From Mytilus edulis (taxonomy: Eukaryota): 64,000 bases of DNA. Position numbers and translations under genes: made by a program. Of this stretch, positions 17,003 through 59,992 are shown piece after piece (position 1 is the stretch's first letter; each line of letters begins with the position of its first letter). The DNA is taken from contig NC_092353.1 in assembly GCF_963676685.1 (NCBI RefSeq), forward strand, positions 84,320,001-84,384,000, read 5' to 3'. The notes beneath the pieces are model-generated. The model ran no database searches. It was not told where the DNA came from and worked only from the letters and a program-made list of their open reading frames with translations.

Positions 17003-17046
17003 GCACCAGATGCGCATTTCGACAATACATGTCTCTTCAGTGATGC
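17003..17046 (-). ncRNA. Minimal type I hammerhead ribozyme, copy 2
   Basis: Identical to copy 1, offset by 349 bp. Confidence 0.85.
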
Positions 17047-17351
17047 TCGTGGCCAAAATATTTGAAATCCAAAGCTTATATAAAAGATGAAGAGCTATAA
17101 TCCAAAAGGTCCAAAAAGTTTAGCCAAATCCGTGAAAGGAATCAGAGCTTTGCATGAGGGAGATACATTCCTTAATTTATAATAAATTCTATCATTTTGT
17201 AACAGCAAATTTTAATAACACAAAAATCCGTATTTTCATGCCAGTACCGAAGTACTGGCTACTGGGGTGGTGATACCCTCGGGGACTAATAGTCCACCAG
17301 CAGAGGCATCGACCCAGTGGTAGTAATTAAATCAACGGTACCAATTTTCTT

Positions 17352-17395
17352 GCACCAGATGCGCATTTCGACAATACATATCTCTTCAGTGATGC
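17352..17395 (-). ncRNA. Minimal type I hammerhead ribozyme, copy 3
   Basis: As copy 1 but GACA>GATA in stem II, which keeps pairing as a U-G wobble. Confidence 0.82.
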
Positions 17396-17760
17396 TCGTG
17401 GCCAAAATATTTGAAATCCAAAGCTTATATAAAAGATGAAGAGCTATAATCCAAAAGGTCCAAAAAGTTTAGCCAAATCCGTGAAAGGAATCAGAGCTTT
17501 GCATGAGGGAGATACATTCCTTAATTTATAATAAATTCTGTCTGTCATGTCAGTATTCACCTCAAAAGCTAACAATCGAAAAGTCTGGCCAGCTCAGATA
17601 ACATTTTTTTTTAAACTTAGCCAGAAAAGTTTTTTGTCGTTCAATTCCTGCCAAAAATTGTTGAAACATTTTAGTTATTGGTTATTAATATTGAAAATCA
17701 CAAACTTTTATCGAATTTGATCGTTTGGAATTTTCAAAATCTATAAACAAGTTTGTTTAA

Positions 17761-39478: not shown

Positions 39479-42400
39479 CTATGCATAATAATTAATATTA
39501 TTGTTCCATCTTTCCAATAAATGTACAATATTTGTATGGTTTTCTCTTCTAGTAATAGCTAATGGTGTAAGTCCTCTCCATTTCCGGTAACAGTCTGCTT
39601 TATGTTTCAATAAAAAAATCAACAATTTCTGCATGGCCTTTATAACATGCTATAAATATGGAAGATTCTCTATTTTCTGTACACTTATTAATGTCTGCCT
39701 TATTATTCATTAACATCTGAAATACTTCAGTATGCCCTTTCCAACAAGCAATGTACAGAGGTGATTCTCTATCAGTATCTCTACGCTTATTAATGTCTGC
39801 CTTATTGTTTATAAACATCTGAACTACTTCAGTATGTCCTTCCTGACAAGCAATGTACAGAGGTGATACTTCTTCATCATCACACTTATTAATGTCAGCC
39901 TTATTGTTTATTAACATCTGAATTACTTCAGTATGTCCGTCCTGACAAGCAATGTACAGAGGTGATACCTCTTCATCATCACACTAATTAATGTCTGCCT
40001 TATTGTTTATCAACATCTGAACTACTTCAGTATGTCCTTCATGACAAGCAATGTACAGAGGTGATACTTCTTCATCATCACACTTATTAATGTCAGCCTT
40101 ATTTTTTATTAACATCTGAACTACTTCAGTATGTCCGTCCTGACAAGCAATGTACAGAGGTGATACCTCTTCATCATCACACTTATAAATGTCTGCCTTA
40201 TTGTTTATCAACATCTGAACTACTTCAGTATGTCCTTCATGACAAGCAATGTACAGAGGTGATACTCCATCAGTATCTCTATACTTATTAATGTCTACCT
40301 TATTGTTTATAAACATCTGAACTACTTCAGTATGTCCTTCCTGACTAGCAATGTACAGAGGTGATACCTCTTCATCATCACACTTATTTATGTCTGCCTT
40401 ATTGTTTATAAACATCTGAACTACTTCAGTATGTCCTTCAAGACAAGCAATGTACAGAGGTGATACTTCTTCATCATCACACTTATTAAAGTCAGCCTTA
40501 TTGTTTATTAACATCTGAACTACTTCAGTATGTCCGTCCTGACAAGCAATGTACAGAGGTGATACCTCTTCATCATCACACTTATTAATGTCTGCATTAT
40601 TGTTTATCAACATCTGAACTACTTCAGTATGTCCTTCATGACAAGCAATGTACAGAGGTGATACTCCATCAGTATCTCTACACTTATTAATGTCTGCCTT
40701 ATTGATTATAAACATCTGAACTACTTCAGTATGTCCTTCCTGACTAACAATGTACAGAGGTGATACTTCTTCATCATCACACTTATTAATGTCAGCCTTA
40801 TTGTTTATTAACATCTGAACTACTTCAGTATGTCCTTAAGGCAAGAAATGAACAGAGGTGATTCTCCAGAATCTCTACACTTATTAATGTCTGCCTTATT
40901 GTTTATTAACGTCTGAACTACTTCAGTATGTCCTTTCTGACAAACAATAATCAGAGGTGATGATCCAGTTTTTCTACACTTATTAATGTCAGCCTTATTG
41001 TTTATTAACATCTGAACTTCAGTATGTCCTTTATAATAAGCAATGTACAGAGTTGATTCTTCTGTATCTCTACACTTATTAATGTCAGCCTTATTGTTTA
41101 TTAACATCTGAACTACTTCAGTATGTCCTTTCTGACAAGCAATGTAAAGAGGTGATGATCCAGTATCTCTACACTTATTAATGTCTGACTTATTGTTTAT
41201 TAAAATCTGACCTACTTCAGTATGTCCTTCCTGACAAGCAATGTACAGAGGTCATACTTCTTCATCATCACACTTATTAATGTCTGCCTTATTGTTTATT
41301 AACATCTGAACTACTTCAGTATGTCCTTAATAACAAGAAATGTACAGAGGTGATTCTCCATTATATCTACACTTAATAATGTCTGCCTTATTGTTTATTA
41401 ACATCTGAACTACTTCAGTATGTCCTTTCTGACAAGCAATGATCAGTGGTGATGATCTAGTTTTTCTACACTTTTTAATTTCAGCCTTATTGTTTATTAA
41501 CATCTGAACTACTTCAGTATGTCCTTTATAACAAGCAATGTACAGAGGTGATGATCCAGTATCTCTACACGTATTAATGTCTGCCTTATTGTTTATTAAC
41601 ATCTGAACTACTTCAGTATGTCCTTTCTGACAAGCAATGTACAGAGGTGATGCTCCAGTATACCTACACTTATTAATGTCTGCCTTATTGTTTATTAACA
41701 TCTGAACTACTTCAGTATGTCCTTTCTGACAAGCAATGTACAGAGATGATGATCCAGTTTTTCTACACTTATTAATGTCTGCCTTATTGTTTATTAACAT
41801 CTGAACTACTTCAGTATGTCCATTATGACAAGCAATGTACAGAGGTGATACTTATTCATCATCACACTTATTAATGTCAGCCTTATTGTTTATTAACATC
41901 TGAACTACTACTTCTGTATGTCCTTTCTGACAAGCAATGTACAGAGGTGATGATCCAGTATCTCTACACGTATTAATGTCTGCTTTATTGTTTATTAACA
42001 TCTGAACTATTTCAGTATGTCCTTTCTGACAAGCAATGTACAGAGGTGATGATCCTGTATATCTACACTTATTAATGTCTGCCTTATTGTTTATCTACAT
42101 CTGAACTACTTCAGTATGTCCTTTCTGACAAGCAATGAACAGAGGTGATGATCCAGTTTTTCTACACTTATTAATGTCTGCCTTATCATTTATTAACATC
42201 TTAACTACTTAAGTACATACATCATGACAAGCAATGTACCGATGTGATACTTATTCATCATCACACTTATTAATGTCAGCCTTATTGTTTATTAACATCT
42301 GAACTACTTCAGTATGTTCTTTCTGACAAACAATGATCAGAGGTGATACCTCTTCATCATCACACTTATTAATGTCTGCCTTATTGTTAATTAACATATG

Positions 42401-45400
42401 AACTACTTTAGCATGTCCATCATGACAAGCAATGATCAGAGGTGATACTTATTCATCATCACACTTATTAATGTCAGCCTTATTGTTTATTAACATCTGA
42501 ACTACTTCAGTATGTTCTTTCTGACAAGCAATGTACAGAGGTGATACCTCTTCATCATCACACTTATTAATGTCAGCCTTATTGTTTATTAACATCTGAA
42601 CTACTTCAGTATGTCCATCATGACAAGCAATGTACAGAGGTGATACTTATTCATCATCACACTTATTAAAGTCAGCCTTATTGTTTATTAACATCTAAAC
42701 TACTTCAGTATGATCTTTCTGACAAGCAATGATCAGAGGTGATGATCCAGTATCTCTACACTTATTAATGTCTGCCTTATTGTTGATTAACATCTGAACT
42801 ACTTCAGTATGTCCTTTCTGACAAGCAATGTACAGAGGTGATGATCCAGTATCTCTATACTTATTAATGTCAGCCTTATTGTTTATTAACATCTGAACTA
42901 CTTCAGTATGTCCTTTATAACAAGACATGTACAGAGGTGATTCTCCAGTATCTCTACACTTATTAATGTCTGCCTTATTGTTTATTAACATCTGAACTAC
43001 TTCAATATGTCCTTTCTGACAAGCAATGTACAGAGGTGATGATCCAGTTTTTCTACACTTATTAATGTCTGACTTATTGTTTATTAACATCTGAACTACT
43101 TCAGTATATCCACCATGACAAGCTATGTACAGAGGTGACACTTCATCATAATCACACTTATTAATGTCAGCCTTATTGTTTATTAACATCTGAACTACTT
43201 CAGTATGTTCTTTCTGACAAGCAATGATCAGAGGTGATGATCCAGTTGTTCTACACTTATTAATGTCAGCCTTATTGTTTATTAACATCTGAACTACTTC
43301 AGTATGTCCTTCCTGACAAGCAATGAACAGAGGTGATACTTCTTCATCGTCACACTTATTTATGCCAGCCTTATTGTTTATTAACATCTGAACTACTTCA
43401 GTATGTCCTTTATAACAAGCAATGTACAGAGGTGATTCTCCAGTATCTCTACACTTATTAATGTCTGCTTTATTGTTTATTAACATCTGAACTACTTCAG
43501 TATGTCCTTTCCAACAAGCAATAAACAGAGGTGATTCTTCAGTATCTCTACACTTATGAATGTCTGCTTGATTGTTTGTTAACATCTGAACTACTGCAGT
43601 ATGCCCTTTCCAACAAGCAATGTACAGAGTCGATTCTCCAGTATCTCTACACTTATTAATGTCTGCCTTATTGTTTATTAACATCTGAACTACTTCAGTA
43701 TGTCCTTTCTGACAAGCAATGTACAGAGGTGATGATCCACTTTTTCTACACTTATTAATGTCTGACTTATTGTTTATTAACATCTTAACTACTTCAGTAT
43801 ATCCACCATGACAAGCAATGTACAGAGGTGATACTTCATCATCATCACACTTATTAATGTCAGCCTTATTGTTTATTAACATCTGAACTACTTCAGTATG
43901 TTCTTTCTGACAAGCAATGATCAGAGGTGATGATCCAGTATCTCTACACTTATTAATGTCTGCGTTATTGTTGATTAACATCTGAACTACTTCAGTATGT
44001 CCTTTCTGACAAGCAATGTACAGAGGTGATGATCCAGTATCTCTATACTTATTAATGTCAGCCTTATTGTTTATTAACATCTGAACTACTTCAGTATGTC
44101 CATTATAACAAGACATGTACAGAGGTGATTCTCCAGTATCTCTACACTTATTAATGTCTGCCTTATTGTTTATTAACATCTGAACTACTTCAATATGTCC
44201 TTTCTGACAAGCAATGTACAGAGGTGATGATCCAGTTTTTCTACACTTATTAATGTCTGACTTATTGTTTATTAACATCTGAACTACTTCAGTATATCCA
44301 CCATGACAAGCTATGTACAGAGGTGACACTTCATCATAATCACACTTATTAATGTCAGCCTTATTGTTTATTAACATCTGAACTACTTCAGTATGTACTT
44401 TCTGACAAGCAATGATCAGAGGTGATGATCCAGTTGTTCTACACTTATTAATGTCAGCCTTATTGTTTATTAACATCTGAACTACTTCAGTATGTCCTTC
44501 CTGACAATCAATGTACAGAGGTGATACTTCTTCATCGTCACACTTATTTATGCCAGCCTTATTGTTTATTAACATCTGAACTACTTCAGTATGTCCTTTA
44601 TAACAAGCAATGTACAGAGGTGATTCTCCAGTATCTCTACACTTATTAATGTCTGCTTTACTGTTTATTAACATCTGAACTACTTCTTTATGTCCTTTCC
44701 AACAAGCAATAAACAGAGGTGATTCTTCAGTATCTCTACACTTATTAATGTCTGCTTGATTGTTTGTTAACATCTGAACTACTGCAGTATGCCCTTTCCA
44801 ACAAGCAATGTACAGAGTCGATTCTCCAGTATCTCTACACTTATTCATGTCTGCCTTATTGTTTATTAACATCTGAACTACTTCAGTATGTCCTTTCTGA
44901 CAAGCAATGTACAGAGGTGATGATCCACTTTTTCTACACTTATTAATGTCTGACTTATTGTTTATTAACATCTTAACTACTTCAGTATATCCACCATGAC
45001 AAGCAATGTACAGAGGTGATACTTCATCATCATCACACTTATTAATGTCAGCCTTATTGTTTATTAACATCTGAACTACTTCAGTATGTTCTTTCTGACA
45101 AGCAATGATCACAGGTGATGATCCAGTTTTTCTACGTTTATTAATGTCAGCCTTATTGTTTATTAACATCTGAACTACTTCAGTATGTCCCTTCTGACAA
45201 GCAATGTACAGAGGTGATGATCCAGTATTTCTACACTTATTAATGTCAGCCTTATTGTTTATTAACATCTGAACTACTTCAGTATGTCCTTTATAACAAG
45301 CAATGTACAGAGGTGATTCTCCAGTATCTCTACACCTATTAATGTCTGCGTTATTGTTTATTAACATCTGAACAACTTCAGTATGTCCTTCCTGACAAGC

Positions 45401-48006
45401 AATGTACAGAGGTGATACTTCTTCATCATCACACTTATTTATGCCAGCCTTATTGTTTATCAACATCTGAACTACTTCAGTATATATTTTATAACAAGCA
45501 ATGTACAGAGGTGATGATCCAGTATCTCTACACTTATTTATGTCAGCCTTATTGTTTATTAACATCTAAACTACTTCAGTATGATCTTTCTGACAAGCAA
45601 TGATCAGAGGTGATGATCCAGTTTTCTACACTTATCAATGTCTGCCTTATTGTTTATTAACATCTAAACTACTTCAGTATGTCCTTTCTTACAAGCAATG
45701 TACAGAGGTGATGATCCAGTATCTCTATACTAATTAATGTCAGCATTATTGTTTATTAACATCTGAACTACTTCAGTATGTCCTTTATAACGAGCAATGT
45801 ACAGAGGTGATTCTCCAGTATCTCTACACTTATTAATGTCTGCCTTATTGTTTATTAAAATCTGAACTACTTCAGTATGTCCTTTCTGACAAGCAATGTA
45901 CAGAGGTGATGATCCAGTATCTCTACACTTATTAATGTCTGCCTTATTGTTTATTAACATCTGAACTACTTCAGTATGTCCTTTCTGACAAGCAATGTAC
46001 AGAGGTGATGATCCAGTATCTCTATACTTATTAATGTCAGCCTTATTGTTTATTAACATCTGAACTACTTCAGTATGTCCTTTGTAATAAGAACTGTACA
46101 GAGGTGATTCTCCAGTATCTCTACACTTATTAATGTCTGCCTTATTGTTTATTAACATCTGAACTACTTCAATATGTCCTTTCTGACAAGCAATGTACAG
46201 AGGTGATGATCCAGTTTTTCTACACTTATTAATGTCTGACTTATTGTTTATTAACATCTGAACTACTTCAGTATATCCACCATGACAAGCTATGTACAGA
46301 GGTGACACTTCATCATAATCACACTTATTAATGTCAGCCTTATTGTTTATTAACATCTGAACTACTTCAGTATGTTCTTTCTGACAAGCAATGATCAGAG
46401 GTGATGATCCAGTTGTTCTACACTTATTAATGTCAGCCTTATTGTTTATTAACATCTGAACTACTTCAGTATGTCCTTCCTGACAAGCAATGTACAGAGG
46501 TGATACTTCTTCATCGTCACACTTATTTATGCCAGCCTTATTGTTTATTAACATCTGAACTACTTCAGTATGTCCTTTATAACAAGCAATGTACAGAGGT
46601 GATTCTCCAGTATCTCTACACTTATTAATGTCTGCTTTATTGTTTATTAAAATCTGAACTACTTCGGTATGTCCTTTCCAACAAGCAATAAACAGAGGTG
46701 ATTCTTCAGTATCTCTACACTTATTAATGTCTGCTTGATTGTTTGTTAACATCTGAACTACTGCAGTATGCCCTTTCCAACAAGCAATGTACAGAGTCGA
46801 TTCTCCTGTATCTCTACACTTATTAATGTCTGCCTTATTGTTTATTAACATCTGAACTACTTCAGTATGTCCTTTCTGACAAGCAATGTACAGAGGTGAT
46901 GATCCACTTTTTCTACACTTATTAATGTCTGACTTATTGTTTATCAACATCTGAACTACTTCAGTATATCCACCATGACAAGCAATGTACAGAGGTGATA
47001 CTTCATCATCATCACACTTATTAATGTCAGCCTTATTGTTTATTAACATCTGAACTACTTCAGTATGTTCTTTCTGACAAGCAATGATCACAGGTGATGA
47101 TCCAGTTTTTCTACATTTATTAATGTCAGCCTTATTGTTTATTAACATCTGAACTACTTCAGTATGTCCTTTCTGACAAGTAATGTACAGAGGTGATGAT
47201 CCAGTATCTCTACACTTATTAATGTCAGCCTTATTGTTTATTAACATCTGAACTACTTCAGTATGTCCCTTCTGACAAGCAATGTACAGAGGTGATGATC
47301 CAGTATTTCTACACTTATTAATGTCAGCCTTATTGTTTATTAACATCTGAACTACTTCAGTATGTCCTTTATAACAAGCAATGTACAGAGGTGATTCTCC
47401 AATATCTCTACACTTATTAATGTCTGCCTTATTGTTTATTAACATCTGAACAACTTCAGTATGTCCTTCCTGACAAGCAATGTACAGAGGTGATACTTCT
47501 TCATCATCACACTTATTTATGCCAGCCTTATTGTTTATCAACATCTGAACTACTACAGTATATCCTTTATAACAAGCAATGTACAGAGGTGATTCTCCAG
47601 TATCTCTACACTTATTTATGTCTGCCTTATTGTTTATTAACATCTGAACTACTTCAGTATGTCCTTTCCAACAAGCAATGTACAGAGGTGATTCTCCAGT
47701 ATCTCTGCACTTATCAATGTCTGCCTTATTGTTTATTAACATCTAAACTACTACAGTATATCCTTTATAACAAGCAATGTACAGAGGTGATTCTCCAGTA
47801 TCTCTACACTTATTTATGTCTGCCTGATTGTTTGTTAACATCTGAACTACTTCAGTATGTCCTTTCCAACAAGCCATGTACAGAGGCGATTCTCCAGTAT
47901 CTCTGCACTTATCAATGTCTGCCTTATTGTTTATTAACATCTAAACTACTTCAGTATGTTCTTTCTTACAAGCAATGTACAGAGGTGATGATCCAGTATC
48001 TCTATA
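39479..48006 (-). pseudogene. Disabled distal part of the ankyrin array plus ancestral C-terminal capping repeat
   Basis: Nonsense codons at 47941, 47743, 45730, 45664, 45566, 42695, 42647, 42449, 42251, 42095, 41852, 41327, 41252, 39984 (list may be incomplete). Frameshifts near 45620, 40838 and 39612-39618. Removing one base at the last gives ...DFLLKHKADCYRKWRGLTPLAITRRENHTNIVHLLERWNNNINYYA* with TAG at 39479-39481. Confidence 0.8.
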
Positions 48007-51000
48007 CTAATTAATGTCAGCATTATTGTTTATTAACATCTGAACTACTTCAGTATGTCCTTTATAACGAGCAATGTACAGAGGTGATTCTCCAGTATCT
48101 CTACACTTATTAATGTCTGCCTTATTGTTTATTAAAATCTCAACTACTTCAGTATGTCCTTTCTGACAAGCAATGTACAGAGGTGATGATCCAGTATCTC
48201 TACACTTATTAATGTCTGCCTTATTGTTTATTAACATCTGAACTACTTCAGTATGTCCTTTCTGACAAGCAATGTACAGAGGTGATGATCCAGTATCTCT
48301 ATACTTATTAATGTCAGCCTTATTGTTTATTAACATCTGAACTACTTCAGTATGTCCTTTGTAACAAGAACTGTACAGAGGTGATTCTCCAGTATCTCTA
48401 CACTTATTAATGTCTGCCTTATTGTTTATTAACATCTGAACTACTTCAATATGTCCTTTCTGACAAGCAATGTACAGAGGTGATGATCCAGTTTTTCTAC
48501 ACTTATTAATGTCTGACTTATTGTTTATTAACATCTGAACTACTTCAGTATATCCACCATGACAAGCTATGTACAGAGGTGACACTTCATCATAATCACA
48601 CTTATTAATGTCAGCCTTATTGTTTATTAACATCTGAACTACTTCAGTATGTTCTTTCTGACAAGCAATGAGCAGAGGTGATGATCCAGTTGTTCTACAC
48701 TTATTAATGTCAGCCTTATTGTTTATTAACATCTGAACTACTTCAGTATGTCCTTCCTGACAAGCAATGTACAGAGGTGATACTTCTTCATCGTCACACT
48801 TATTTATGCCAGCCCTATTGTTTATTAACATCTGAACTACTTCAGTATGTCCTTTATAACAAGCAATGTACAGAGGTGATTCTCCAGTATCTCTACACTT
48901 ATTAATGTCTGCTTTATTGTTTATTAACATCTGAACTACTTCGGTATGTCCTTTCCAACAAGCAATAAACAGGGGTGATTCTTCAGTATCTCTACACTTA
49001 TTAATGTCTGCTTGATTGTTTGTTAACATCTGAACTACTGCAGTATGCCCTTTCCAACAAGCAATGTACAGAGTCGATTCTCCAGTATCTCTACACTTAT
49101 TAATGTCTGCCTTATTGTTTATTAATATCTGAACTACTTCAGTATGTCCTTTCTGACAAGCAATGTACAGAGGTGATGATCCACTTTTTCTACACTTATT
49201 AATGTCTGACTTATTGTTTATCAACATCTGAACTACTTCAGTATATCCACCATGACAAGCAATGTACAGAGGTGATACTTCATCATCATCACACTTATTA
49301 ATGTCAGCCTTATTGCTTATTAACATCTGAACTACTTCAGTATGTTCTTTCTGACAAGCAATGATCACAGGTGATGATCCAGTTTTTCTACATTTATTAA
49401 TGTCAGCCTTATTGTTTATTAACATCTGAACTACTTCAGTATGTCCTTTCTGACAAGCAATGTACAGAGGTGATGATCCAGTATCTCTACACTTATTAAT
49501 GTCAGCCTTATTGTTTATTAACATCTGAACTACTTCAGTATGTCCCTTCTGACAAGCAATGTACAGAGGTGATGATCCAGTATTTCTACACTTATTAATG
49601 TCAGCCTTATTGTTTATTAACATCTGAACTACTTCAGTATGTCCTTTATAACAAGCAATGTACAGAGGTGATTCTCCAGTATCTCTACACCTATTAATGT
49701 CTGCCTTATTGTTTATTAACATCTGAACAACTTCAGTATGTCCTTCCTGACAAGAAATGTACAGAGGTGATACTTCTTCATCATCACACTTATTTATGCC
49801 AGCCTTATTGTTTATCAACATCTGAACTACTACAGTATATCCTTTATAACAAGCAATGTACAGAGGTGATTCTCCAGTATCTCTACACTTATTTATGTCT
49901 GCCTTATTGTTTATTAACATCTGAACTACTTCAGTATGTCCTTTCCAACAAGCAATGTACAGAGGTGATTCTCCAGTATCTCTACACTTATTAATGTCTG
50001 CCTGATTGTTTGTTAACATCTGAACTACTTCAGTATGTCCTTTCCAACAAGCCATGTACAGAGGCGATTCTCCAGTATCTCTGCACTTATTAATGTCTGC
50101 CTTATTGTTTATCAACATCTGAACTATTTCAGTATGTCCTTTATAACAAGCAATGTACAGAGGTGATTCTCCAGTATCTCTGCACTTCTTAATGTCTGCC
50201 TTATTGTTTATTAACATCTGAACTACTTCAGTATGTCCTTTCCAACAAGCCATGTACAGAGGTGATTCTCCAATATCTCTACACTTATTAATGTCTGCCT
50301 TATTGTTTATTAACATCTGAACTACTTCAGTATGCCCTTTCCAACAAGCAATGTACAGAGGCGATTCTCCAGTATATCTACACTTATTAATGTCTGCCTT
50401 ATTGTTAATTAACATCTGAACTACTTCAGTATGTCCTTTCTGACAAGTAATGTACAGAGGCGATGCTCCAGTATCTCTACACTTATTAATGTTTGCCTTA
50501 TTGTTTATTAACATCTGAACTACTTCAGTATGTCCTTCATGACAAGCAATGTACAGAGGTGATACTTCTTCATCATTACACTTATAAACGTCTGCCTGAT
50601 TTTTTATTAACATCTGAACTACTTCAGTGTGTCCTTCCTGACAAGCAATGTACAGAGGTGATATTTCTTTATCATCACACTTATTTATGTCAGCCTTATT
50701 GTTTATTAACATCTGAACTACTTCAGTATGTCCGTTCCAACAAGCAAAGTACAGAGGTGATACTTCGTCATCATCACACTTATTAATGTCTGCCTTATTG
50801 TTTATTAACATCTCAACTACTTCAGTATGTCCTTTCTGACAAGCAATGTACAGAGGTGATGATCCAGTATCTCTACACTTATTAATGTCTGCCTTATTGT
50901 TTATTAACATCTGAACTACTTCAGTATGTCCTTTCTGACAAGCAATGTACAGAGGTGATGATCCAGTATCTCTATACTTATTAATGTCAGCCTTATTGTT

Positions 51001-51170
51001 TATTAACATCTGAACTACTTCAGTATGTCCTTTGTAATAAGAACTGTACAGAGGTGATTCTCCAGTATCTCTACACTTATTAATGTCTGCCTTATTGTTT
51101 ATTAACATCTGAACTACTTCAGTATGTCCTTCCTGACAAGCAATGCACATAGGTGATTCTCCATCACTAT
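39600..51170 (-). repeat. Tandem array of ~116 ankyrin-encoding 99-bp units (a few 102 or 96 bp)
   Basis: Consensus xxxxSPLYIACxxGHTEVVQMLINNKADINKC repeats continuously. 11.57 kb / 99 bp gives ~116-117 units (estimate). Confidence 0.97.
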
Positions 51171-52487
51171 CACGACTATGGTTTACATTATTGGTATAAT
51201 GATGGAGACACCATTTAACTAAATCAATATTTCCTATAAAACAACACTGTATTAATGGAGTACTGTTGTCAGTGTCATATGAACTGGCCAATTGTTTTTG
51301 TTGTGATATTGCTAAGCTTTTTATATGAAGTAGTAATTGTTTTCCGAAGATGCAATCGTCCATATTGATGTTACAGAAAACATCCACTACCTTTCCTCTT
51401 GACCAGTCATCAACCATTCTGTTTAGATACATTTGCTGATATTTTTTTGGTACAATAATTGTAAATTCATCATTTTTGCTTTTTCTTTCAAATAAAAATC
51501 TTTCACTAATAAATTGACTTGTAGTATTATTAATTAAACAATAAATCATTTTATTGCCAAAGTAAAAAGCAAGAAAGTCAAATAGCTTGTCATGAATGGT
51601 TCTGTAGACTTCACCATCCTTTCTGATGTATGTACGTGTAAGTGAATCTAGCTCATCACGTAAAACCAATCGTGACGTCCCTTCAACCACTTTACAAGCT
51701 TCATATGTGTTCTTTATAATTGTTTTGATGTTTTCATTCACATGTTCAGTAAGCCATTCTTCTTTCAACTGATTGTTAAACATTACACATAGAGCAAGTG
51801 CACAGTATTTGACATGTGCTCCCTCTGTCTGTAATTTATCTATCTCTTCTTTGTAAACTGTAAATGGATTCGTAAAGAAATTTACAATGTTCAGTTTTGG
51901 GTTTTTGCTGTACAATTGACACAAAAGAGGAAAACAGTCAAACATGTCAAACAATTCACTGATATCAGAAGCGTTTGTTTTCAGGTAAAATTCAGCAATG
52001 GATTGTTTTTCTGTTTTCAATAAACACAAATCGGCAGACTGAAGATTGCATTCACAAGTTTGAAAGAATGATAACGCTTTCATTTGCCTATCCCTATAAA
52101 CCTGTAGTCTACAAGACATTATTAACTTCACTTGTTTCTTTTCTACTAATGTCTTGATTTTTTCCATAACATTTTTCCAGGTTTCTAACTTCATTGGATT
52201 TAAACTATATGTTCCACAAAAATCATCCACTACAAACAATGTCTTCTTACTTGGATCGTACCACTTGATGATTTCCTTTGGATTTGATACTGATAAAATC
52301 TCATAGCCTTCATTTTGCATCTGTAAAGCTACGTGACGCACCAATGATGTTTTCCCTGTACCAGAACTTGCTGTGACAACAACACAACCATTTTCTTTAA
52401 TGCACTTTAATACACATTTTGCTCCGTTTGTTTCTATAAATGTTTTGTCATCTTCTTTCCAGTTTTCTAATTCCTCATTAATTTGTC
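48007..52487 (-). CDS. Coding exon 4: nSTAND3-type P-loop NTPase, helical region, ~32 ankyrin repeats
   Basis: Acceptor TTTTCTTTTCCAG ends at 52488, extending the listed ORF 5' to GQINEELENWKEDD.... Walker A ASSGTGKT at 52348-52371, Walker B LFVVDD. Canonical ankyrin units start near 51165. Confidence 0.9.
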
Positions 52488-55400
52488 CTGGAAAAGAAAA
52501 TTTGACAACTCTTTTAATACTTCTTTTTTAAGATGAAAGTTCAGAAATATTTGACATATATGATAAAGAAAATTTGCTTGACATATGGTATAAACAACAG
52601 GCTTGACCTATCCATGCTATGTATAGGTAAAAGACTTGACATACGGTATGAACAATTTGCTTGTCAAATGGTATAGACAAAAGGCTAGACATATGGTATG
52701 GACAAAAGGCTTGACCTATGAATACTATGTATTTAGGCAAAAGGCTTCACATACGTATTTATAATTTGCTTGAAAATAAGTATAGACAAAAGGCTTGGAT
52801 ACGGTGTCGAAAAAGGGCTTGACCTACAGTATAGACAAAAGGCTCAACCTATGGTATAGACAAAGGCTTGACCTATAATAAATAAAGGCAACAGTAGTTT
52901 ACCGCTGTTCAAAACTGATAAATCCATGGAAAAAAACAAAATCGGGGTAACAACCTAAACCCGATGGAAACGCATTTCACAATGATATGCACTGGAAATA
53001 GGTTTGGAATATGATAATTTGCCAGACATAGTGTATGGACAAAAGGCTTGACTTATAAATGCTATGTATTTATGACTTATAATATGGACAATTCACTTAA
53101 CATATGGTTTAGATTTGATTTTTGAATTTTGGTGTTTTAACCGCTTTTTGTTATATTTCATGGCGGTTTGTATTGGTGGAGGAAGCCCGAGTGCCTGGAG
53201 ACCACCACCGACCTTCGATATATGGTTTAAACATTTCACTTGACATATGGTTCACATAACTGACATAACATCTATAGGGTATGGATACTTGACTTGACAT
53301 ATTATATAGACATTTCACTTGACATACTGTACATATAATTGACATAACATCTATAGGGTATAGATAACTGACATAACATCAATAGGGTATGGATAATTGA
53401 CTTGACATATGATATAGACATCACTTGACATAGGGTACTATATAAATAACATATAGCTGAGAGGGTGATAGAGCAGATTGGTACCCCGAGAAAACATTGT
53501 CAACCGCGGCGAAGCCAAGGTTGACAATGCCTTTTCGAGGGGTTCCAATCTGCTCTATCACCCTCTCAGCTATGTGTTATTTAATTTATTATACTGAATG
53601 TTCTGTTATTACTGTCGATTTTTTAAATTCAAAGTAATAAACTGTGACATCTTGTACATAACCATCCGTATTTAGTAAAGCGCACACTTGATCAAACGTC
53701 TCCGTGAAGGGTAATAGAGTATTTGCCATAGGATAGTGTCGTATTGAATAAAGCGCACACTTGATCAAGCGTCTCTGGGAAGGGTGATAGAGTATTTGTC
53801 ATAGGATAGAGTCGTATTTAATAAAGCGCACACTTGATCAAGCGTCTCCATGAAGGGTAATAGAGTAAATTGACACCCTCGTATTAGCCAATCAAAATCT
53901 GGCATTTTGACATGAAGTATAATAAATATAATTGACATAACATCTATACGGTATAGATAACTGACATAACATCTATAGGGTGTGGATAATTGACTTGACA
54001 TATAATATAGACATTTCACTTGACAAACGGTACATATAATTGACATAACATCTATAGGGTATAACTGACATAACATCTATAGGGTTTGGATAATTGACTT
54101 GACATATAATATAGACATTTCACTTGACATACGGTACATATAATTGACATAACATCTATAGGGTAAAGATAACTGACACAACATCTATAGGGTACGGATA
54201 ATTGACTTGACATATGATATAGACCTTTTAATCGACATAGGGTACATATAATTGACATAACATATATAGGGTACAGATAACTGACATAACATCTATAGGG
54301 TATGGATAATTGACTTGACATATGATATAGACACTTCACTTGACATAGGGTACAGATAATTGACATAACATCTATAAGGTACAGATAATTGACACAACAT
54401 CTATAGGGTATGGAAAATTGACATAACATCTATAGGGTATGGATAATTGACTTGACATATGATATGGTATCATATGGATATATGGTATGGACGATTGACT
54501 TCACATGAAGTATGGACAACTATCTTTACATATGGTATGGACAAGTAATTTGATGTCTGGTATAGACAATTAAATTGATATATGGTATAGACAATTTGTA
54601 TGACTCATGGTGTAGACAATTGACTTGATATATGAAATGGAAAATTGACTTGACATATATGGTATGGACAACTAGTTTGACATAGTCATTGACTTTGAAT
54701 ATGGTATAGACATACTAAACTGATAGTTGACTTGATATATGGTAAAGCCAAGTGGTTTAACAATAGGTTTAGACAGTTGACTTGACATATGTGTAGCTAA
54801 ATGGCATCAGATTATATAAAGCCAGTTTTACTGGACATACGAGGGTCGTAATGGGTGTACCTTCACGATGAATAACTGTAAAAAATCGTGCCGAATGACG
54901 TTAACGGTAATTTTCGGTGGATAACGATAATATGTACACTTTCTTTAAGACGATTTAAAAGTCCAATGATTTTGACGAATCACATTAATTTTATTCCAAA
55001 AAACTATAATTATTTGAGACCTCTGACGAATCACGGTAAGGATATTTTGAGGAATCACGATAAAATTTAACCAATTAGACGCTATCAGTAGATGAAAATG
55101 ACCGTTTGACTCCTGACGGTAAAGGACATTACTATCCTCACATATGTGTAGCCAAATAACTTCAGATAAGATATAGACAATTGACTTGACATATGGTATA
55201 GCCAAGTGTAAGACATAAGGTATAGACAATTAGCTTGACATATGGTACCGAAAAGTAGTTTGAGATAACAGTTTACTTGGCATACGGTTAAGATAATTGT
55301 CTTGACATATCAAGCAAACAATTGCTATATGTTAGAAAAAGTGGTCGACATCAGGTAAGGACAAGTGACTTGACATATGGTTAATACAACTGGCTGGACA

Positions 55401-58400
55401 TTTGGTATAAATAATTGATTTGACATATGCTATGGACTATTGACTTGACATAAGATACGGACTATTAACTTGACACGTTGTATGGACAATTGACTTGATA
55501 TATGGCATTGATAAGCCATAATTGACATAAGGTATAGACTAATTACTTTACATACGATAAAGACAATGATTTGACATATGGTTTGGACAATTGACTTGAC
55601 ATATGTAATATGGACAATACAATTGACATATGATATGGGCATTTGATTTGAAATATGGTATGGACTATAGATTAACATAGGATCAGGACAACGGAACTGC
55701 AATCAAGTCTTGACATTGACATTGTTGAAACATTTTCATGCCATAATAAATTGACAATTGACTTGACATATGGTATTGACTATGGAAGCAACATTATTTA
55801 TAAACATTTGACTTGACACATGATATTGCCAAGTAGCTTGACATGAGTTATAAACAATTGGTTTACCATATTGTATGGATAATTGGTTTGACATAATAAT
55901 TGATGGCATATGGGGTAGATAATTGACTTGACATCTCAATGAGATAATTGACTTGATATATTGTATAGCAAAGTGACTAGAAATCAGATATTGACAACTG
56001 GCTTGGGATAAGATATGGACAATTGATTTGACATATGGTTAAGACAGTTTACTTGACAGATGTGATGGACAATTGGTTTGATATACGGAATGGAAAATTT
56101 ACTTGACATATGGTATAGATGATTGGTTTGACATAATAAATGATTTGGCATAAGGATATATAGATAAATGGCTTGACATTTCTAACAGATAATTGACTTC
56201 ACATAGGATATAGCCAAGTATCGTGACATTAGATACAGACAACTGACTTGATATATAGTGTGGACAAATTGGTTTTGCATATAATAATTGACTTGGTATA
56301 TTGTAAAGACAATTGACATGAAATAAAGTATGGCAAAGAGGCTTGACATATGGTATTACCAAGTGCATTGATATGTATAGATAATTGACTTGGTATATGG
56401 CATAACATATGGTATAGCATATTAATCTATTGCAATAAAAAAATCATAGTATCTAATAAAATTTGTAGATTAAGCTAACAAAGTCCTCATATTTGGATAC
56501 AAGTAACATTCGTTTATAGTGGATAATTGTTTTAACGTTGAATAAGCTTCAAATAAAAATTGCTTGCTAGTCCCTCTCTGTGATTACCATTAAATATTTC
56601 TGGTTCATTTCCCAATCAATCTATCATCAAGTGAAGATAAATACTTCGATTTTCATTCAAACTCTTTTTCAAAAATGATAAACGGTTCTTTATATTGGTA
56701 TGTAATCATTTTAAACGTTTCAAATTTATGAAATTATATTCGTACATCAATGTTTTTGATATACCAATAACAAAAACTGAAATATATTCAATTGATACAT
56801 TTTGTAATTATTCAAAATTATATCATAAACCTTAACTTAATTATAAAAAAATTAACAGGTTTAGGGGAGACAATACTCGCATAACTTTTTCGAATTGGCA
56901 CATAACACAACGGAATGTCACTCTTGCATACAAATGGCACATCAATATAATTTATTAACTGTGCAATCGTGCTACACCTTCAACTATGATTCTAGATTAT
57001 AAATATAATCAAAAGTTGTTAATCTATAGATAGTGAAGCTAATGAAAGCTAACCCACTGTAAAAATATTTCTTTGCGATTTTTTAAAACTTTCTCAAAAA
57101 AATGCTCGAGCCACTTGAATTTCATAGCTCAAAATTAACGTTTATACACAATTTTTGAATAAAGTAGTTGAAGATTATTCGCTTCTTAAAATATAAGACG
57201 CAATTAAAATCGTATGCTTGCACCATCTTACCGAAATATGTATTTAATTAAGTCCTGAACATTTAGACATTTCTTCGTCTATTTTAATCAAAACCGGTTT
57301 TAAACAACTTACAAGTACGTGTTAAGATCCGACTAAATACATATTTCCCGCTATGGTCAGGTAAATTTGCTACTATTATAATATATACCTCTTAGGTTCC
57401 ATGGTATTGGGTCTTTTAAAATCTCTGTGACTTTTGAGTGTTCAATTTGTAAATCCCTATGGGAATTCTTCAGATCTATCAGATTTTTTGTAGTGCTTGA
57501 GTTTTCTGTTTGCAAAGCTGTAAGATTTTCCCTCATGGTAGAGTGTTCAATTTCTATTGTTCGTCTCAATTCCTTCATTTCTTCCTGTGATTGTTTGATT
57601 TCCAGCATAATTTCCTGGTTTGACTGATCTAAGATTTTAACCTTTAGATCTAGGCACTCCTGATTCATTGGTAAACCACCCAATCTATTTACAGCCTGAA
57701 GATAAATATTCCAGAAAGTTACCATAAACAGAGTTGCAATCTTCGTATATTCATAAGAAGTAATTATTTTTGGGTTAGGTATAGATTTTAAATTTATGAT
57801 AATGGAAAAAAAAACTCAGGAAATATATGTCACAGGATGAATACGAAATATGCCAACATTTTAGTCAATGAATTCAAGAGGGGCGAAAGATACCAGAGGA
57901 ACAGTCAAACTTATAAATCGACAATAAACTGACAACGCCAAGGCTTTAAATGAAAAAGAAAAACAGAGACATCATAGTACACAAGAAACAACATAGAAAA
58001 CTAAAGACTGAGCAACACGAATCCCACCAAAAACGGGAGGTGTTCTCAGGTGCCCTGGGAAATTGTGACTTATATATACTAGTAATAAGATGATGTACTT
58101 ATTGATATCTAAGTCTGTTTTGCACGATGTATGTCATCTACGAGGGTTTTTTTATAAGTTGTCAGTAAGTGTAGGTGCTTTTTTTCTTTACTCTTATCAC
58201 ATTATTGATTGTGAATCTGATGAGTCAAGCCCTTTTCAGATGATTTTCAAAAAAATCATGGCTGTTCGGTTTTGTAGTGATGTTTTAGTTCATTTTCGAA
58301 TAATGAGTTTATATGTCCCTTTGGTATTTTTTGCCTCTCTATTACCTATCTGTCACAGGTTAGATACGGGTTGGGTGCTCACAAACATTTTTAACAATAC

Positions 58401-59992
58401 CACAATATTTTTATGTCTATCCCAAATCAAGAGCCGCCAATTCATTGGTTTTCAGTAATTGCTGTCTACAACTTTTTTTTCGTTTAATGTTTGTTTGATA
58501 AATACGGTTGTTTATTTTGTTTTAAATATTGTGTTCATCAAGTTTTTTACAGTTTACTTAATGGTATATGTTTTGCTCATTGCTGAAACTATGCGCCGAC
58601 CTGTACAATATAATTATTTTTTAAAGAATGTACTTACATCTACTACATTTGTCCATGCTGTATTGAAATCACCTGTTGGCATGGTGTTACTATCATGATG
58701 AGCTAGTATATTTCTGTACCATTTAATCCTGGCAAGATCAGACCCTGGAGTTGTCTCCCCTGGTAGTGGTAGCTTATCAAATCCATTGATTGGAGGGGTG
58801 ACAGATGTCAAGTTTCTGATCAAACATATCATCAACGTTACATCAAAAGTTTTGGAATTCGGTACACCTGTAACAACGGCAGACATTGAACGTCAACAGC
58901 TATTCATTTCTCTTTATAAACAAAATTCGCTCTAGTAAATAACGGCAACGGTTGTCTACCGCTGTTCAAAAGTAATCAATCGATTGTGAGAAAACAGATC
59001 CGGGTTTATTATCAAAACCGAGGGTAACACATTACATACTAGTATAAGAACATAACAACGGAACAACAGAAACGCTGAAATGCAACAAACAGACGCAAAC
59101 AAACATAGCAATGAACTGTTTGGCGTGACTGGTAGATAAATTCATATATCACCATGTACGTAATACAAATTGTATAAAATTCACCATCTACTGCATCTAG
59201 ATGAGTAACCTTCTGACCGGTATTATAACGTTGGTGTTGTCTCTCTCTACTGTTCTTCTTATGTTTAGCATTAAGATATTTGAAATATTTTTACATTATT
59301 TGATTTTTGTTTTAAAGTTTTATAACACTATATTTTGTTTGTTTTTGAAAAACTTTCATTGAAAGATGGATGTATTAATCAATTCAATGACAAAATAAAT
59401 GCATATTGAGGACAAGAACAAATTAACAGACAGCAAAATAAGTAAGTCTGCAATTTATACAGAGAGTATAAAAATAATTGTTCTTTAACCAACTAAAGCC
59501 CAAGCTATTTTCTGTTTCTTTTAGCTTTACTTTAACATGTTTAATTCATGACTTTTATAGAATAAAGATAATTTGTATTAGAGCTTGGCCTAATGCTTTA
59601 TATGTGTCTGTTGATGAGGAGTGTATGTTGTCCTTCTTTTATTCCTACATTGTTGGATCCATATCACCGCAAAATCTGCATAAAATCAGATTGTCAATTC
59701 ATATCAATCAAATATAAAACAGAGCTACTGTATTTCTGTAGACATATATAGATACATACCGGTATATAAAATACGTACCATTTGTTGGAAATAAAAGATT
59801 CCACTGAGCTTGGTTTAAGATTCTCTTTTTAAACAATCCATTCAGAGTGTTGTAGTTTTTTTTCAACGTTGATGGTAGAAAAGTAGGTGGAAATTCCTTG
59901 TCAAAGAAAGTACGGACTGCTCTTGGTGTTACTCCTCTCAATAACAAAGCTAATCTGATATAATTCTCTTCTTCGTCCGAAAGAGGTGACAT
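48007..59992 (-). CDS. HEPN (DZIP3-like) - coiled coil - nSTAND3-type NTPase - ~32x ankyrin protein (NLR/STAND-like); join of complement(59779..59992, 58638..58867, 57389..57695, 48007..52487), 1743 aa
   Basis: Four exons joined at GT-AG sites with matching phases (1,0,1). Lengths 214+230+307+4481=5232 nt, divisible by 3 and open to TAG at 48007-48009. Motifs: FDVTLMICLIRNL and DLARIKWYRNILAH (HEPN), VVVTASSGTGKT (Walker A), LFVVDDFCG (Walker B), then ankyrin repeats. Domain names are from recognition, not a search. Confidence 0.88.
53443..53925. mobile_element. Foldback-type insertion: 141-bp terminal hairpin plus 3 x ~73-bp internal repeats
   Basis: Inverted repeat 53443-53583 centred on gcGAAgc. 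taaagcgcacacttgatcaa occurs three times. The insertion splits one minisatellite unit at a TA-rich site. Confidence 0.7.
54841..55138. mobile_element. Possible ~300-bp MITE
   Basis: Imperfect 13-bp TIR gagggtcgtaatg / cattactatcctc, with internal gaatcac repeats. Confidence 0.45.
57389..57695 (-). CDS. Coding exon 3: end of HEPN plus coiled-coil linker
   Basis: Acceptor TCTTCAG ends at 57696; GT donor at 57388. Heptad-like E/Q/K/L-rich sequence ending DPIPWNLR. Confidence 0.82.
58638..58867 (-). CDS. Coding exon 2: HEPN core with R-x4-H motif (RNILAH, 58698-58715)
   Basis: Acceptor TTACAG ends at 58868; donor GTAAGT starts at 58637. Translation is VPNSKTFDVTLMICLIRNL...DLARIKWYRNILAHHDS...AWTNVVD. 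Confidence 0.88.
59779..59992 (-). CDS. Coding exon 1: N-terminal helix of DZIP3-like HEPN region (MSPLSDEEENYIRLALLL...NQAQWNLLFPTN)
   Basis: ATG at 59992-59990. Donor GTACGT starts at 59778. A TTTTTTCCAG acceptor at 60060-60059 suggests the exon starts near 60058 and that a 5' UTR exon lies further upstream. Confidence 0.85.

Follow-up and report, generated by a model that had tools for sequence, protein, structure and literature searches.

The window analysed here is a stretch of 64,000 nt of Mytilus edulis DNA (assembly GCF_963676685.1, contig NC_092353.1, positions 84,320,001–84,384,000 of the forward strand). It carries, on its minus strand, a gene in which a P-loop NTPase is followed by a very long array of ankyrin repeats. 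Exon 1 (59777–59992, minus strand), with the start of the HEPN region, was located by tblastn with the N-terminus of the Mytilus homolog P0006 (79% identity, no stop); since the exons were searched singly and not as a joined model, its HEPN_DZIP3 score of 25.1 bits, below the Pfam cutoff of 27, refers to this exon alone. Exon 2 (58635–58868, minus strand; 95% identity in tblastn) encodes the core of a DZIP3-like HEPN domain with the RIKWYRNILAHH motif; it matched Pfam PF18738 with an E-value of 1.1e-20 (74.3 bits, cutoff 27), and the R-x4-6-H motif of HEPN is present as RNILAH. The region of exon 3, a coiled-coil linker with approximate limits at 57390–57767 (minus strand), aligned to residues of about 150–278 of P0006 with two gaps, and intron 3/4 (52576–56135) is full of 25-, 29-, and 108-bp tandem repeats found by Tandem Repeats Finder. 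The large exon begins, after a cag splice acceptor (52490–52488), with an nSTAND3 NTPase and a helical linker (51172–52487, minus strand). Its translation contains intact Walker A (SSGTGKTS, including GTGKT) and Walker B (LFVVDD) motifs, and PF20720 was matched over profile positions 1–153 of 155 (E = 1.8e-29, 102.9 bits, cutoff 27.2). The ankyrin part of the same exon scored 1170 bits with PF12796 and 824 bits with PF00023. Exons 1–4 are all open in the tblastn alignments, and the predicted order of the protein would be an RNase-type HEPN head, a coiled coil, the nSTAND3 P-loop NTPase, ankyrin repeats, and a C-terminal cap. A degenerate penultimate unit and the ancestral cap (LLKHKADCYRKWRGLTPLAITRRENHTNIVHLLERW...) were recognised by three-frame translation at 39479–39680 (minus strand), the cap matching the C-termini of the homologs P0002, P0006, and P0011.

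A protein search returned 227 matches at E ≤ 0.001; among the best 120, 119 were from Mytilus, and these best 120 share the Pfam set of the locus. At least 596 candidate loci of the family were found in the same genome, of which 96 were scored. The family appears in the databases under the names 'uncharacterized protein', 'ankyrin-1-like', and 'DZIP3-like HEPN domain-containing protein'. With this lineage-specific Mytilus expansion the locus shares its domain order, unit framework, C-terminal cap, and NTPase (up to 87% identity); it is a member of a very large family of HEPN-nSTAND3-ankyrin (NLR-like) genes, with the array as its probable C-terminal sensor end. The Mytilus homologs compared have from a handful to about 20 units (an uncounted estimate) and an in-frame cap, whereas the array described here has 116 units interrupted by stops, by far the longest among the loci read. 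Intact paralogs with very long arrays are present in the same genome, with open frames of up to 3810 amino acids. We know of no member of the family with an established binding partner or function. In one raw RNA run, of which about 18% was read, four partial reads were found, on the array only; a second run gave none in the roughly 6% read, a result that does not count as a test.

Tandem Repeats Finder reported a single array at 39664–51164 with a period of 99, 116.1 copies, and 87% matches. Cutting it at a conserved anchor gave 116 units of 99 bp on the minus strand, from window position 51171 to 39681. An AF2 model of units 1–10 has paired helices in every unit, helix 1 at unit positions 7–14 and helix 2 at positions 17–25. 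A Foldseek search with this model gave TM-scores of 0.87–0.92 to a DARPin, AnkR, and AnkB, the closest fold being the DARPin (TM 0.91), and in the HMMER alignment to DARPin 6mol_A unit positions 1, 4, 6–8, and 15–16 correspond to the DARPin framework residues D, G, TPL, and GH.

Only units 1–31 (48103–51171, minus strand) can be translated from the gene start; they are in frame with the NTPase in the ORF at 48007–52344 and were identified from the unit table, the Pfam Ank families, and, for units 1–10, the AF2 model. The first in-frame stop, TAG at 48007–48009, is codon 32 of unit 32 (48004–48102, minus strand), and units 33–116 (39681–48003, minus strand) are untranslatable, higher-order block duplicates, according to the unit table, stops, and deletions. 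In this single assembly, about 17 stops and three frameshifts follow unit 31. Beyond unit 32, stops lie in units 33, 35, 55, 56, 57, 86, 87, 89, 91 (two), 92, 95, 100, 101, 105, and 113; 14 stops were mapped in gap-free units, and those in units 56, 57, and 105 are additional. Two of the frameshifts are due to the loss of a single base, in units 57 and 105, and the third puts the C-terminal cap out of frame with the last units; one of the three falls in an A-run. Units 32 and 55 are identical, including the stop, so stops were copied in register; the blocks were therefore amplified while already untranslatable. Units 13–32 and 36–55 differ at 13 sites in 1980 nt, other blocks are 98.4–99.5% identical, and units 2–4 likewise have identical or nearly identical copies in the tail (units 52–54). 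Altogether, the 116 units comprise 90 distinct DNA sequences and collapse into 55 clusters at no more than two differences. A plausible course of events is that a stop arose in unit 32 and that several rounds of duplication then copied blocks of about 12–23 units together with their stops, the distal 85 units presumably decaying neutrally. A preliminary description had spoken of a natural DARPin-like library; given the limits of the open frame, the 116 units do not make up one translated library. In this haplotype the array is probably a 31-repeat receptor-like gene lacking its C-terminal cap, followed by a pseudogenised repeat tail, and not a library of 116 modules.

Variation within the unit is strongly position-specific. 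Across the 116 units, amino-acid entropy reaches 0.93–1.91 bit at positions 1, 2, 3, 4, 5, 9, 13, and 14 and does not exceed 0.74 at the other 25, and these 8 of the 33 positions hold 58% of the pairwise amino-acid differences. This is what the preliminary description had reported, namely a concentration of variants in the hairpin and in helix 1, and all the variants listed there were found: RDTG, RKTG, RTTG, RNTG, RKSG, DDEE, DDDE, or DYDE followed by E, S, V, or A in the hairpin, and Y/I/F at position 9, Q/Y/W/H at position 13, and K/E/G/D at position 14 in helix 1. In 18 array segments from paralogs the same positions are hot (5, 14, 3, 13, 9, 10, and 2). On the AF2 model, the variable positions belong to the hairpin/loop and to helix 1 of the ankyrin solenoid, as had been anticipated; judged by homology and the DARPin register, they would lie on the concave binding surface. 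The correspondence with DARPin contact positions is partial: positions 2, 3, 5, 13, and 14 are variable, but so are 1, 4, and 9, while position 33 is not. The framework had also been described as nearly invariant at the DNA level. Its nucleotide diversity is indeed low (0.063–0.065 in the 25 framework codons versus 0.30–0.33 in the 8 variable ones), but only 12 of the 99 nucleotide columns are invariant, and synonymous diversity is equal in the two classes (pS of 0.11–0.14 in the framework and 0.12–0.18 in the variable codons). Among units 1–31, mean pairwise identity is 80% for amino acids and 88% for nucleotides.

In the framework, omega was 0.33–0.7, which supports purifying selection. At the variable sites the non-synonymous excess depends on the method: pairwise omega (pN/pS) was 1.8–3.3, but tree-based omega was 1.2–2.2 and not significant, and FEL, a site-by-site likelihood analysis run with the full-data tree, gave a nominally positive result at site 9 alone (p = 0.019). 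A tree built from the framework only yielded very large positive signals from an unreliable fit, and in the pool of 18 paralog array segments site 5 had the highest value, 1.55 (uncorrected p = 0.012). On internal branches omega was 0.37 in the framework (p of about 0.001) and 1.5–2.2 at the variable sites; on terminal branches it was 0.9–1.2 in both site classes (Fisher p 0.37–0.83). The 28 private changes that followed block duplication (22 non-synonymous, 6 synonymous) include only 4 at the 8 variable codons; mutations of the most recent age are distributed evenly over the unit and look neutral. Diversifying selection on contact residues, proposed earlier, was thus not demonstrated, but the pairwise values and the signals on the framework-only tree leave room for it, and the tree-based tests may understate it. 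The cassette positions are probably either unconstrained or subject to mild diversifying selection, while purifying selection holds the framework.

Free reassortment of hairpin and helix variants, which the preliminary description had proposed to check, is not seen. Only 30 of 220 possible combinations occur, compared with 36.1 ± 1.6 after shuffling (p = 0.0004), and positions 5 and 13 are associated (chi-square p = 2e-7); the variable positions thus lack the independent assortment of a combinatorial DARPin-like library. Between genes the combinations differ, only 3 of 32 recurring. The states of the hairpin and of helix 1 go together in a 14-codon cassette, and exchange within the conserved half of the unit brings cassettes into new combinations with the framework. 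Unit 35 (47707–47805, minus strand) is an exact chimera: bases 1–60 are those of units 14 and 37 and bases 61–99 those of unit 33, with no differences on either side of a crossover inside the conserved half. Of 741 informative site pairs, 149 have all four gametes, and 48 of these 149 pair a hairpin site with one in the second half of the unit. The distance between frameworks does not depend on the hairpin type: between acidic and basic units it is 0.061, equal to the within-type distance, while units of the same type in paralogs are 0.05–0.22 apart. Within the array, framework pS is 0.125; between genes, dS is 0.10–0.24 in the framework and 0.19–0.62 in the NTPase (L002–L010). The chimera, the four gametes, the framework distances, and the order of pS below dS together testify to concerted evolution and repeat shuffling, and the homogenised scaffold bears out that part of the earlier interpretation. 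As a whole, the preliminary description was correct in its observation and only partly supported in its interpretation.

The cassettes appear to be older than the array. In the 22 other genes examined, the hairpins RDTGE, RDTGA, and DDEEV were found in 9, 8, and 3 genes, respectively, the array has its acidic hairpin codons in common with the paralogs L004 and L017, and the same cassette types occur in proteins of M. galloprovincialis, M. trossulus, and M. californianus. The basic RxTG, acidic DDEE, and 34-residue RDTDG types, common to paralogs and other Mytilus species, would then predate the array. The 33-residue unit consists of the 14-codon variable cassette (the hairpin tip and helix 1, on the groove side as judged by homology) and a 19-codon conserved segment (helix 2 and the loop). 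The long conserved segments may provide the homology at which unequal crossing-over and gene conversion take place. Such exchange would multiply, remove, and re-order entire cassettes and keep the framework uniform. Anatomy, redundancy, lesions, position-specific variability, framework constraint, and mosaic exchange are seen in the data, whereas it is inferred that the groove binds a ligand, that the gene has an immune role, and that unequal crossing-over drives the changes. The locus is probably the cassette-exchanging sensor array of an NLR-like gene, which has run away and become mostly pseudogenised.

Other readings were weighed against this one. If all 116 units formed a functional, selected DARPin-like library, with diversifying selection on contacts and an order of acidic, basic, and aromatic modules that encodes specificity, one would understand why variation is concentrated in the hairpin and helix 1, why pairwise dN/dS is 1.8–3.3 there and 0.33–0.8 elsewhere, why fold and register match DARPins, and why intact long-array paralogs exist. 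It is nevertheless highly improbable, given the stops and frameshifts past unit 31, the out-of-frame cap, blocks untranslatable when amplified, the even and neutral post-duplication changes, the few and linked combinations, and the collapse of the units into 55 clusters. It is also very unlikely that tail units 33–116 are kept as silent cassettes from which gene conversion or unequal exchange, be it in germ-line or in somatic cells, supplies the expressed units 1–31. The V pseudogenes that act as donors in birds and the silent antigen cassettes of parasites would be parallels. The tail copies of open-frame units, the chimera, the widespread four-gamete incompatibilities, and a framework homogenised across cassette types agree with such a reservoir, but plain tandem block duplication yields the same data, the tail decays neutrally in framework and cassette alike with no sign of maintenance, and neither somatic variation nor the partial sampling of the two RNA runs provides evidence for it.

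It is unlikely that errors of assembly or polishing produced the block count, part of the stops, and the deletions of single bases, and that the real gene is intact with another number of repeats. The 2.3-kb blocks, at 98.4–99.5% identity, are difficult for an assembler, an A-run holds one of the frameshifts, the array is covered by short-read contigs only as 54–137-nt pieces of very uneven depth, too short to span the repeats, and no self-identical annotated protein was found in the length range searched. However, most of the lesions are substitutions, which create TAG, TAA, and TGA stops in different codons, some are common to block copies that differ elsewhere, the cap is out of frame as well, and two DNA runs have no listed difference in the bin of the first stop, at the level of the bin and not of codon coverage. 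By analogy, the family may be the animal counterpart of fungal HIC NLRs, with exchange of 14-codon cassettes rebuilding recognition surfaces and untranslated tails feeding the expressed repeats as reservoirs, an extension of the cassette-exchange reading that we consider quite unlikely.

To our knowledge, bivalves have no adaptive immunity. Their NLR-like gene families are huge and fast-changing, and the sensing domains are unstudied. The locus illustrates how an ankyrin sensor array may change, hairpin/helix cassettes being duplicated and re-ordered through exchange in the conserved half, as in fungal HIC NLRs, and it makes the cost of array instability visible in a runaway array that lost its reading frame. 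The family is a place to test repeat shuffling as a diversity mechanism in animals; if cassettes were exchanged with reservoir tails, an innate receptor of a bivalve would have its diversity generated in the germ line, or even somatically. The locus is useful as a worked example, but since the match to DARPin positions is expected and the array is mostly non-coding, no new principle emerges.

The idea that order encodes specificity is modelled on TAL effectors, whose 34-residue repeats have two hypervariable residues and spell the DNA target by their order; near-identical units with few hypervariable residues are common to them and the locus. The ligands of ankyrin grooves are protein surfaces, either folded or extended, and we know of no one-module-one-letter code for these grooves. 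The likeness to DARPins and ANK-N5C comprises the 33-residue unit, its register, the fold, and variable positions 2, 3, 5, 13, and 14, which coincide with randomised ones (in DARPins, we take these to be 2, 3, 5, 13, 14, and 33). The locus differs in that the array is natural and, with linked hairpin and helix states, not combinatorial, and in that positions 1, 4, and 9, which belong to the design framework, vary while 33 and 26 do not. According to the ANK-N5C report (PMC4308713), positions 2, 3, 5, 10, 13, and 33 were randomised as the sites of highest entropy in natural repeats. The resemblance is expected because the designs derive from the variability pattern of natural repeats.

A close parallel is with fungal HIC NLRs with ANK, TPR, or WD repeats (Podospora nwd/het-e/het-d, Pa_3_8560). 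HIC NLR-like proteins are described in animals too, with nSTAND3 among the ATPases considered, in section 12 and the Fig. 8 legend of PMC13449251. The locus differs from the fungal genes by an nSTAND3 domain in place of NACHT or NB-ARC, by its HEPN head and bivalve host, by positive selection that is not significant on the tree, by the pseudogenisation of two thirds of the array, and by a mean unit identity of 80%, under the 85% threshold for 'high internal conservation' of Dyrka et al. 2014 (PMC4986451). Many pairs of units in the array are identical. Both have a STAND NTPase followed by near-identical repeats, variability in a few inner-helix and hairpin positions of the concave face (at the locus, as judged by homology), and concerted evolution with repeat shuffling, accompanied in the fungi by changes in repeat number.

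A single 99-bp tandem array occupies positions 39664–51164 of the window (116.1 copies, 87% matches in Tandem Repeats Finder). Cutting the minus strand at a conserved 24-base anchor, with a few indels repaired, yielded 116 ankyrin units running from 51171 to 39681, which are numbered here in the direction of translation. The residues of a unit were numbered R1 D2 T3 G4 E5 S6 P7 L8 Y9 I10 A11 C12 Y13 K14 G15 H16 T17 E18 V19 V20 Q21 M22 L23 I24 N25 N26 K27 A28 D29 I30 N31 K32 C33. In a HMMER alignment, D/R1, G4, S6-P7-L8 and G15-H16 coincide with the D, G, TPL and GH of 6mol_A, a designed ankyrin repeat protein (DARPin) chain, and the unit numbering is therefore also the DARPin register.

The variation among the units is concentrated at a few positions, as the preliminary description had claimed. 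The amino-acid entropy over the 116 units is 0.93, 1.36, 1.60, 1.19, and 1.74 bit at positions 1, 2, 3, 4, and 5, and 0.96, 1.91, and 1.52 bit at positions 9, 13, and 14, while it does not exceed 0.74 bit at the remaining 25. Nucleotide diversity is 0.30–0.33 in these eight codons versus 0.063–0.065 in the other 25, and 58% of all pairwise amino-acid differences fall within the eight. In an AF2 model of units 1–10 (mean pLDDT 79.9, pTM 0.75), whose best structural match is DARPin 6mol_A (TM 0.91, rmsd 2.2), with AnkB and AnkR next, helix 1 comprises positions 7–14 and helix 2 positions 17–25. Taken together with the entropy values, these limits place the variation in the loop or hairpin ahead of helix 1 and in helix 1 itself, in agreement with the location proposed earlier; according to PMC4986451 and PMC4308713, these elements face the concave binding groove in fungal NLR ankyrin repeats and in a designed ankyrin library, respectively. 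The pLDDT of the model falls below 50 at residues 198–201 only; there, in unit 7 (window 50479–50577), begins an acidic NDEE hairpin devoid of the usual glycine at position 4. Acidic hairpins may adopt another turn. In 18 segments of arrays at paralogous loci, the mean entropy is likewise high at position 5 (1.69), position 14 (1.60), positions 3 and 13 (1.44), positions 9 and 10 (1.20), and position 2 (0.96), which makes the pattern of variability a property of the family.

The positions randomised in DARPins, reportedly those of Binz et al. 2003, had been put forward as the counterpart of this pattern. The match is real, but it is imperfect: the array also varies at positions 1, 4, and 9, and shows no variation at 33 and 26. 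It is also expected, since designers picked the high-entropy positions of natural repeats; for the library ANK-N5C, positions 2, 3, 5, 10, 13, and 33 were randomised because the entropy of natural repeats peaks there (PMC4308713). The pattern is a general property of natural ankyrin repeats, and the resemblance to DARPins is an instance of this generic variability.

The array forms the 3′ part of one large exon (splice acceptor in the sequence at 52490–52488), which carries an nSTAND3 P-loop NTPase upstream of the units (PF20720, 102.9 bits; Walker A GTGKT, Walker B LFVVDD). Three further exons, all free of stops, were found upstream when the exons were searched one by one and not as a joined protein: exon 1 (59992–59777), exon 2 (58868–58635), and exon 3 (about 57767–57390) all match the N-terminus of Mytilus homologs, and exon 2 encodes a DZIP3-like HEPN domain (PF18738, 74.3 bits) with an RNILAH motif. 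A bacterial or viral origin can be dismissed, given that the gene has introns and sits in a 1.37-Gb eukaryotic genome. Homologs from M. galloprovincialis, M. trossulus, and M. californianus have the order HEPN, coiled coil, nSTAND3, ankyrin units, a penultimate unit containing IFIACYKGHAEIVEFLLKHKADC, and a cap ending in RENHTNLVHLLERWNKQSI; by estimate, and not by count, these homologs have between a handful and some twenty ankyrin units. A protein-database search at E ≤ 0.001 returned 227 proteins, and of the 120 top-scoring ones 119 bear the name Mytilus. Within 0.55–1.75 times the query length, this search gave no annotated protein that is identical to the array gene, a result that would fit a pseudogene call but proves nothing.

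The family comprises at least 596 candidate loci in this genome, and the open frames of the 96 that were scored range from 332 to 3810 aa. The longest belongs to L028/L022 (G000:C7:93001974-93003302), a locus with 45% NTPase identity to the array gene, whose uninterrupted 3810-aa frame has room for roughly a hundred ankyrin repeats with a framework unlike that of the array (WSPLNSASDEGHTDIVKLLLEK...); if real, this would be an exceptionally long intact ankyrin array. Just outside the window, at G000:C10:84199354-84305707 on the same chromosome, three further members lie within 170 kb, namely the intact L004 (83% identity) and two broken copies with 4 and 2 stops. In the 86%-identical paralog L003/L012 (G000:C13:35740864-35755680), the open frame stops after 755 aa, and a second open run of 383 aa with the same ankyrin units follows about 1 kb downstream, suggesting that a repeat tail past the first stop may be recurrent in the family.

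Several other repeats were observed in the window. The intron between exons 3 and 4 (52576–56135) contains 25-, 29-, and 108-bp tandem repeats with a TTGACATATGGTATAGACAA-like motif. A 107-bp satellite is present at 7988–9491 (14 copies, 97% matches, 429-bp higher-order period), and a 349-bp tandem repeat at 16628–17539 (2.6 copies, 99% matches). Short tandem arrays of a 26-bp unit (ATCCCTGCAATACAACACATAGTTTT) at 3571–3624, 12041–12176, and 15727–15780 may derive from a dispersed element, as its termini or as a repeat within it.

The 116 units do not form one translated library. The NTPase frame stays open as far as the end of unit 31, and its first stop is a TAG at codon 32 of the next unit, unit 32 (48007–48009). 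The alignment contains 17 stop codons in 16 units, 14 of which, in gap-free units, have mapped coordinates; those beyond the first are in units 33, 35, 55, 56, 57, 86, 87, 89, 91 (two), 92, 95, 100, 101, 105, and 113. Unit 57 has lost one base within an A-run, unit 105 carries another one-base deletion, and the C-terminal cap typical of the family, located at 39613–39479, is in a frame different from that of the last units, which amounts to a third frameshift. A satellite with no coding history is ruled out by the ankyrin frame kept in the units and by this cap 3′ of the array.

Redundancy was assessed from unit-by-unit distances, since fixed-lag self-identity was blurred by indels. The 116 units represent 90 distinct DNA sequences, which collapse to 55 clusters when up to two differences are allowed, and they are organised in higher-order blocks. 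Between units 13–32 and 36–55, 13 of 1980 bases differ (99.34% identity), units 2–4 match units 29–31 and 52–54 (99.33%), and identities of 99.08% and 98.57% were found between units 63–73 and 75–85 and between units 42–53 and 62–73, respectively. Units 32 and 55 are identical, stop included, and units 33 and 56 have a codon-21 stop in common. Stops common to block copies must be older than the last block duplications, so that the blocks were amplified when already untranslatable. The locus is not a selected library of 116 modules.

Raw reads were compared with window positions 47600–52600. One DNA run (X1) covered the NTPase exon in a single 1814-base contig with 6 differences, and another (X7) in short pieces; on the array, both gave only pieces of 54–137 bases with very uneven depth, so that the lesions and the number of blocks rest on one assembly. 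No difference is listed at the first stop in the DNA runs, though the coverage of that codon was not displayed. The RNA runs gave the gene no support. From run X24, of which about 18% was read, 4 reads were recovered, all partial and confined to the array; run X21 gave none at about 6% of the run, too little for a test.

Each unit can be divided into a 14-codon cassette, comprising the hairpin, for instance basic (RxTG) or acidic (DDEE), and helix 1, and a conserved second half. Hairpin and helix variants do not reassort freely: only 30 of 220 possible combinations occur among 48 cluster representatives, against 36.1 ± 1.6 after shuffling (p = 0.0004). Among the major states, E5 accompanies Y/W13 in 16 of 17 cases, S5 accompanies Q13 in 10 of 12, and V5 accompanies Q or H in 13 of 14 (chi-square p = 2e-7); linkage was judged from the combination count and this 3 × 3 table, Cramer's V being noisy with many rare states. 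The cassette is, however, shuffled relative to the remainder of the unit. All four gametes are present in 149 of 741 informative site pairs, 48 of which join the hairpin to the second half of the unit, and a silent A/T polymorphism at codon 28 occurs in equal proportion in basic and acidic units. In the framework, acidic units are as far from basic ones (0.061) as units of one type are from each other (0.054 and 0.063). An exact chimera is seen in unit 35: its bases 1–60 are those of units 14/37 and its bases 61–99 those of unit 33, neither part showing a single difference. These patterns fit the concerted evolution of the scaffold proposed in the preliminary description.

Comparison with other genes of the family indicates that the cassette types predate the array. 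RDTGE, RDTGA, and DDEEV hairpins are found in 9, 8, and 3 of 22 other genes, respectively, and the acidic hairpin codons of L004 and L017 are the same as in the array; only 3 of 32 hairpin–helix combinations of the array recur in other genes. Silent divergence of the framework is 0.125 within the array and 0.10–0.24 between genes, and for these pairs of genes it reaches 0.19–0.62 in the NTPase domains. The arrays of L017, L019, and L026 are old and heterogeneous (pS 0.48–0.69). The framework distance to the array units is 0.051 for the acidic units of L004 versus 0.158 for its basic units, a pattern that hints at exchange between neighbouring genes. The observed linkage, shuffling, and divergence are consistent with recombination, in which unequal crossing-over and gene conversion would find their homology tract in the conserved 57 bases of each unit, and the 42-base cassette would travel as one block. 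The locus neatly illustrates how cassettes are shuffled in an NLR-like ankyrin sensor of an animal.

A non-synonymous excess at the variable sites, also anticipated earlier, appeared in pairwise comparisons and was not significant for changes counted on a tree. By the Nei–Gojobori method, the eight variable codons have pS 0.12–0.18, pN 0.34–0.38, and dN/dS 2.6–3.3, and the framework has pS 0.11–0.14, pN 0.047–0.060, and dN/dS 0.33–0.49. With site classes fixed beforehand (paralog-defined positions 2, 3, 5, 9, 10, 13, and 14, the DARPin list, or the ANK-N5C list), pN/pS was 1.8–2.25 versus 0.55–0.81 for the rest. Equal silent divergence in both classes means that the framework is not more homogenised than the cassette at the DNA level, which excludes stronger homogenisation of the framework at silent sites. 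When parsimony changes were counted on a maximum-likelihood tree built from the 90 different unit sequences, omega over the whole tree was 1.2–1.6 in the variable classes (p for >1 = 0.10–0.43) and 0.64–0.71 at other sites (p for <1 = 0.01–0.03). On internal branches, the values were 1.5–2.2 (p = 0.12–0.24) versus 0.37–0.43 (p = 0.001–0.004), with a significant difference between the classes (Fisher p = 0.001–0.006), and on terminal branches 0.9–1.2 in both (Fisher p = 0.37–0.83).

In a site likelihood test (custom script, MG94-type, fixed tree), the full-data tree gave a global omega of 0.69, with only site 9 nominally positive (p = 0.019) and sites 6, 23, 28, 30, and 33 negative. On a framework-only tree, which is poorly resolved, sites 1, 2, 3, 5, 9, and 13 became enormously positive in an unconverged fit, with parameters stuck at starting values and numerical warnings, so that this run shows tree dependence only. 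Such dependence is expected, because the units are mosaics. In the 18 pooled paralog segments, the highest omegas were at site 5 (1.55, p = 0.012 uncorrected) and sites 2 and 3 (1.42), and class omegas were 1.12–1.14 for variable sites versus 0.47–0.53 for the rest. Minimum-spanning-tree counts of the different codons in each column were saturated at synonymous sites and were set aside. After block duplication, 28 private changes arose (22 non-synonymous and 6 synonymous), of which only 4 hit the eight variable codons against an expectation of about 7; the 20 open-frame copies (6 non-synonymous, 1 synonymous) and the 46 copies outside (16 and 5) look alike. In our reading, the framework has been shaped by purifying selection, the cassette positions were unconstrained or mildly positively selected in their older history, and nothing except neutral decay is visible since the array expanded.

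A limited literature search returned no publication on repeat variability in the Mytilus HEPN–nSTAND3–ankyrin family. Lineage-specific expansions joining HEPN, STAND, and ankyrin modules in bivalves have been described from sequence analysis (PMC8195603). The closest described system to the array is that of fungal NLRs whose ANK, TPR, or WD repeats are of high internal conservation, for which PMC4986451 reports concerted evolution, variable repeat number, and positively selected sites on the concave face. NLR-like proteins with such repeats are stated to exist in animals as well, nSTAND3 being one of the ATPases considered (PMC13449251). The gene described here is a further member of an already known kind of NLR-like ankyrin protein.
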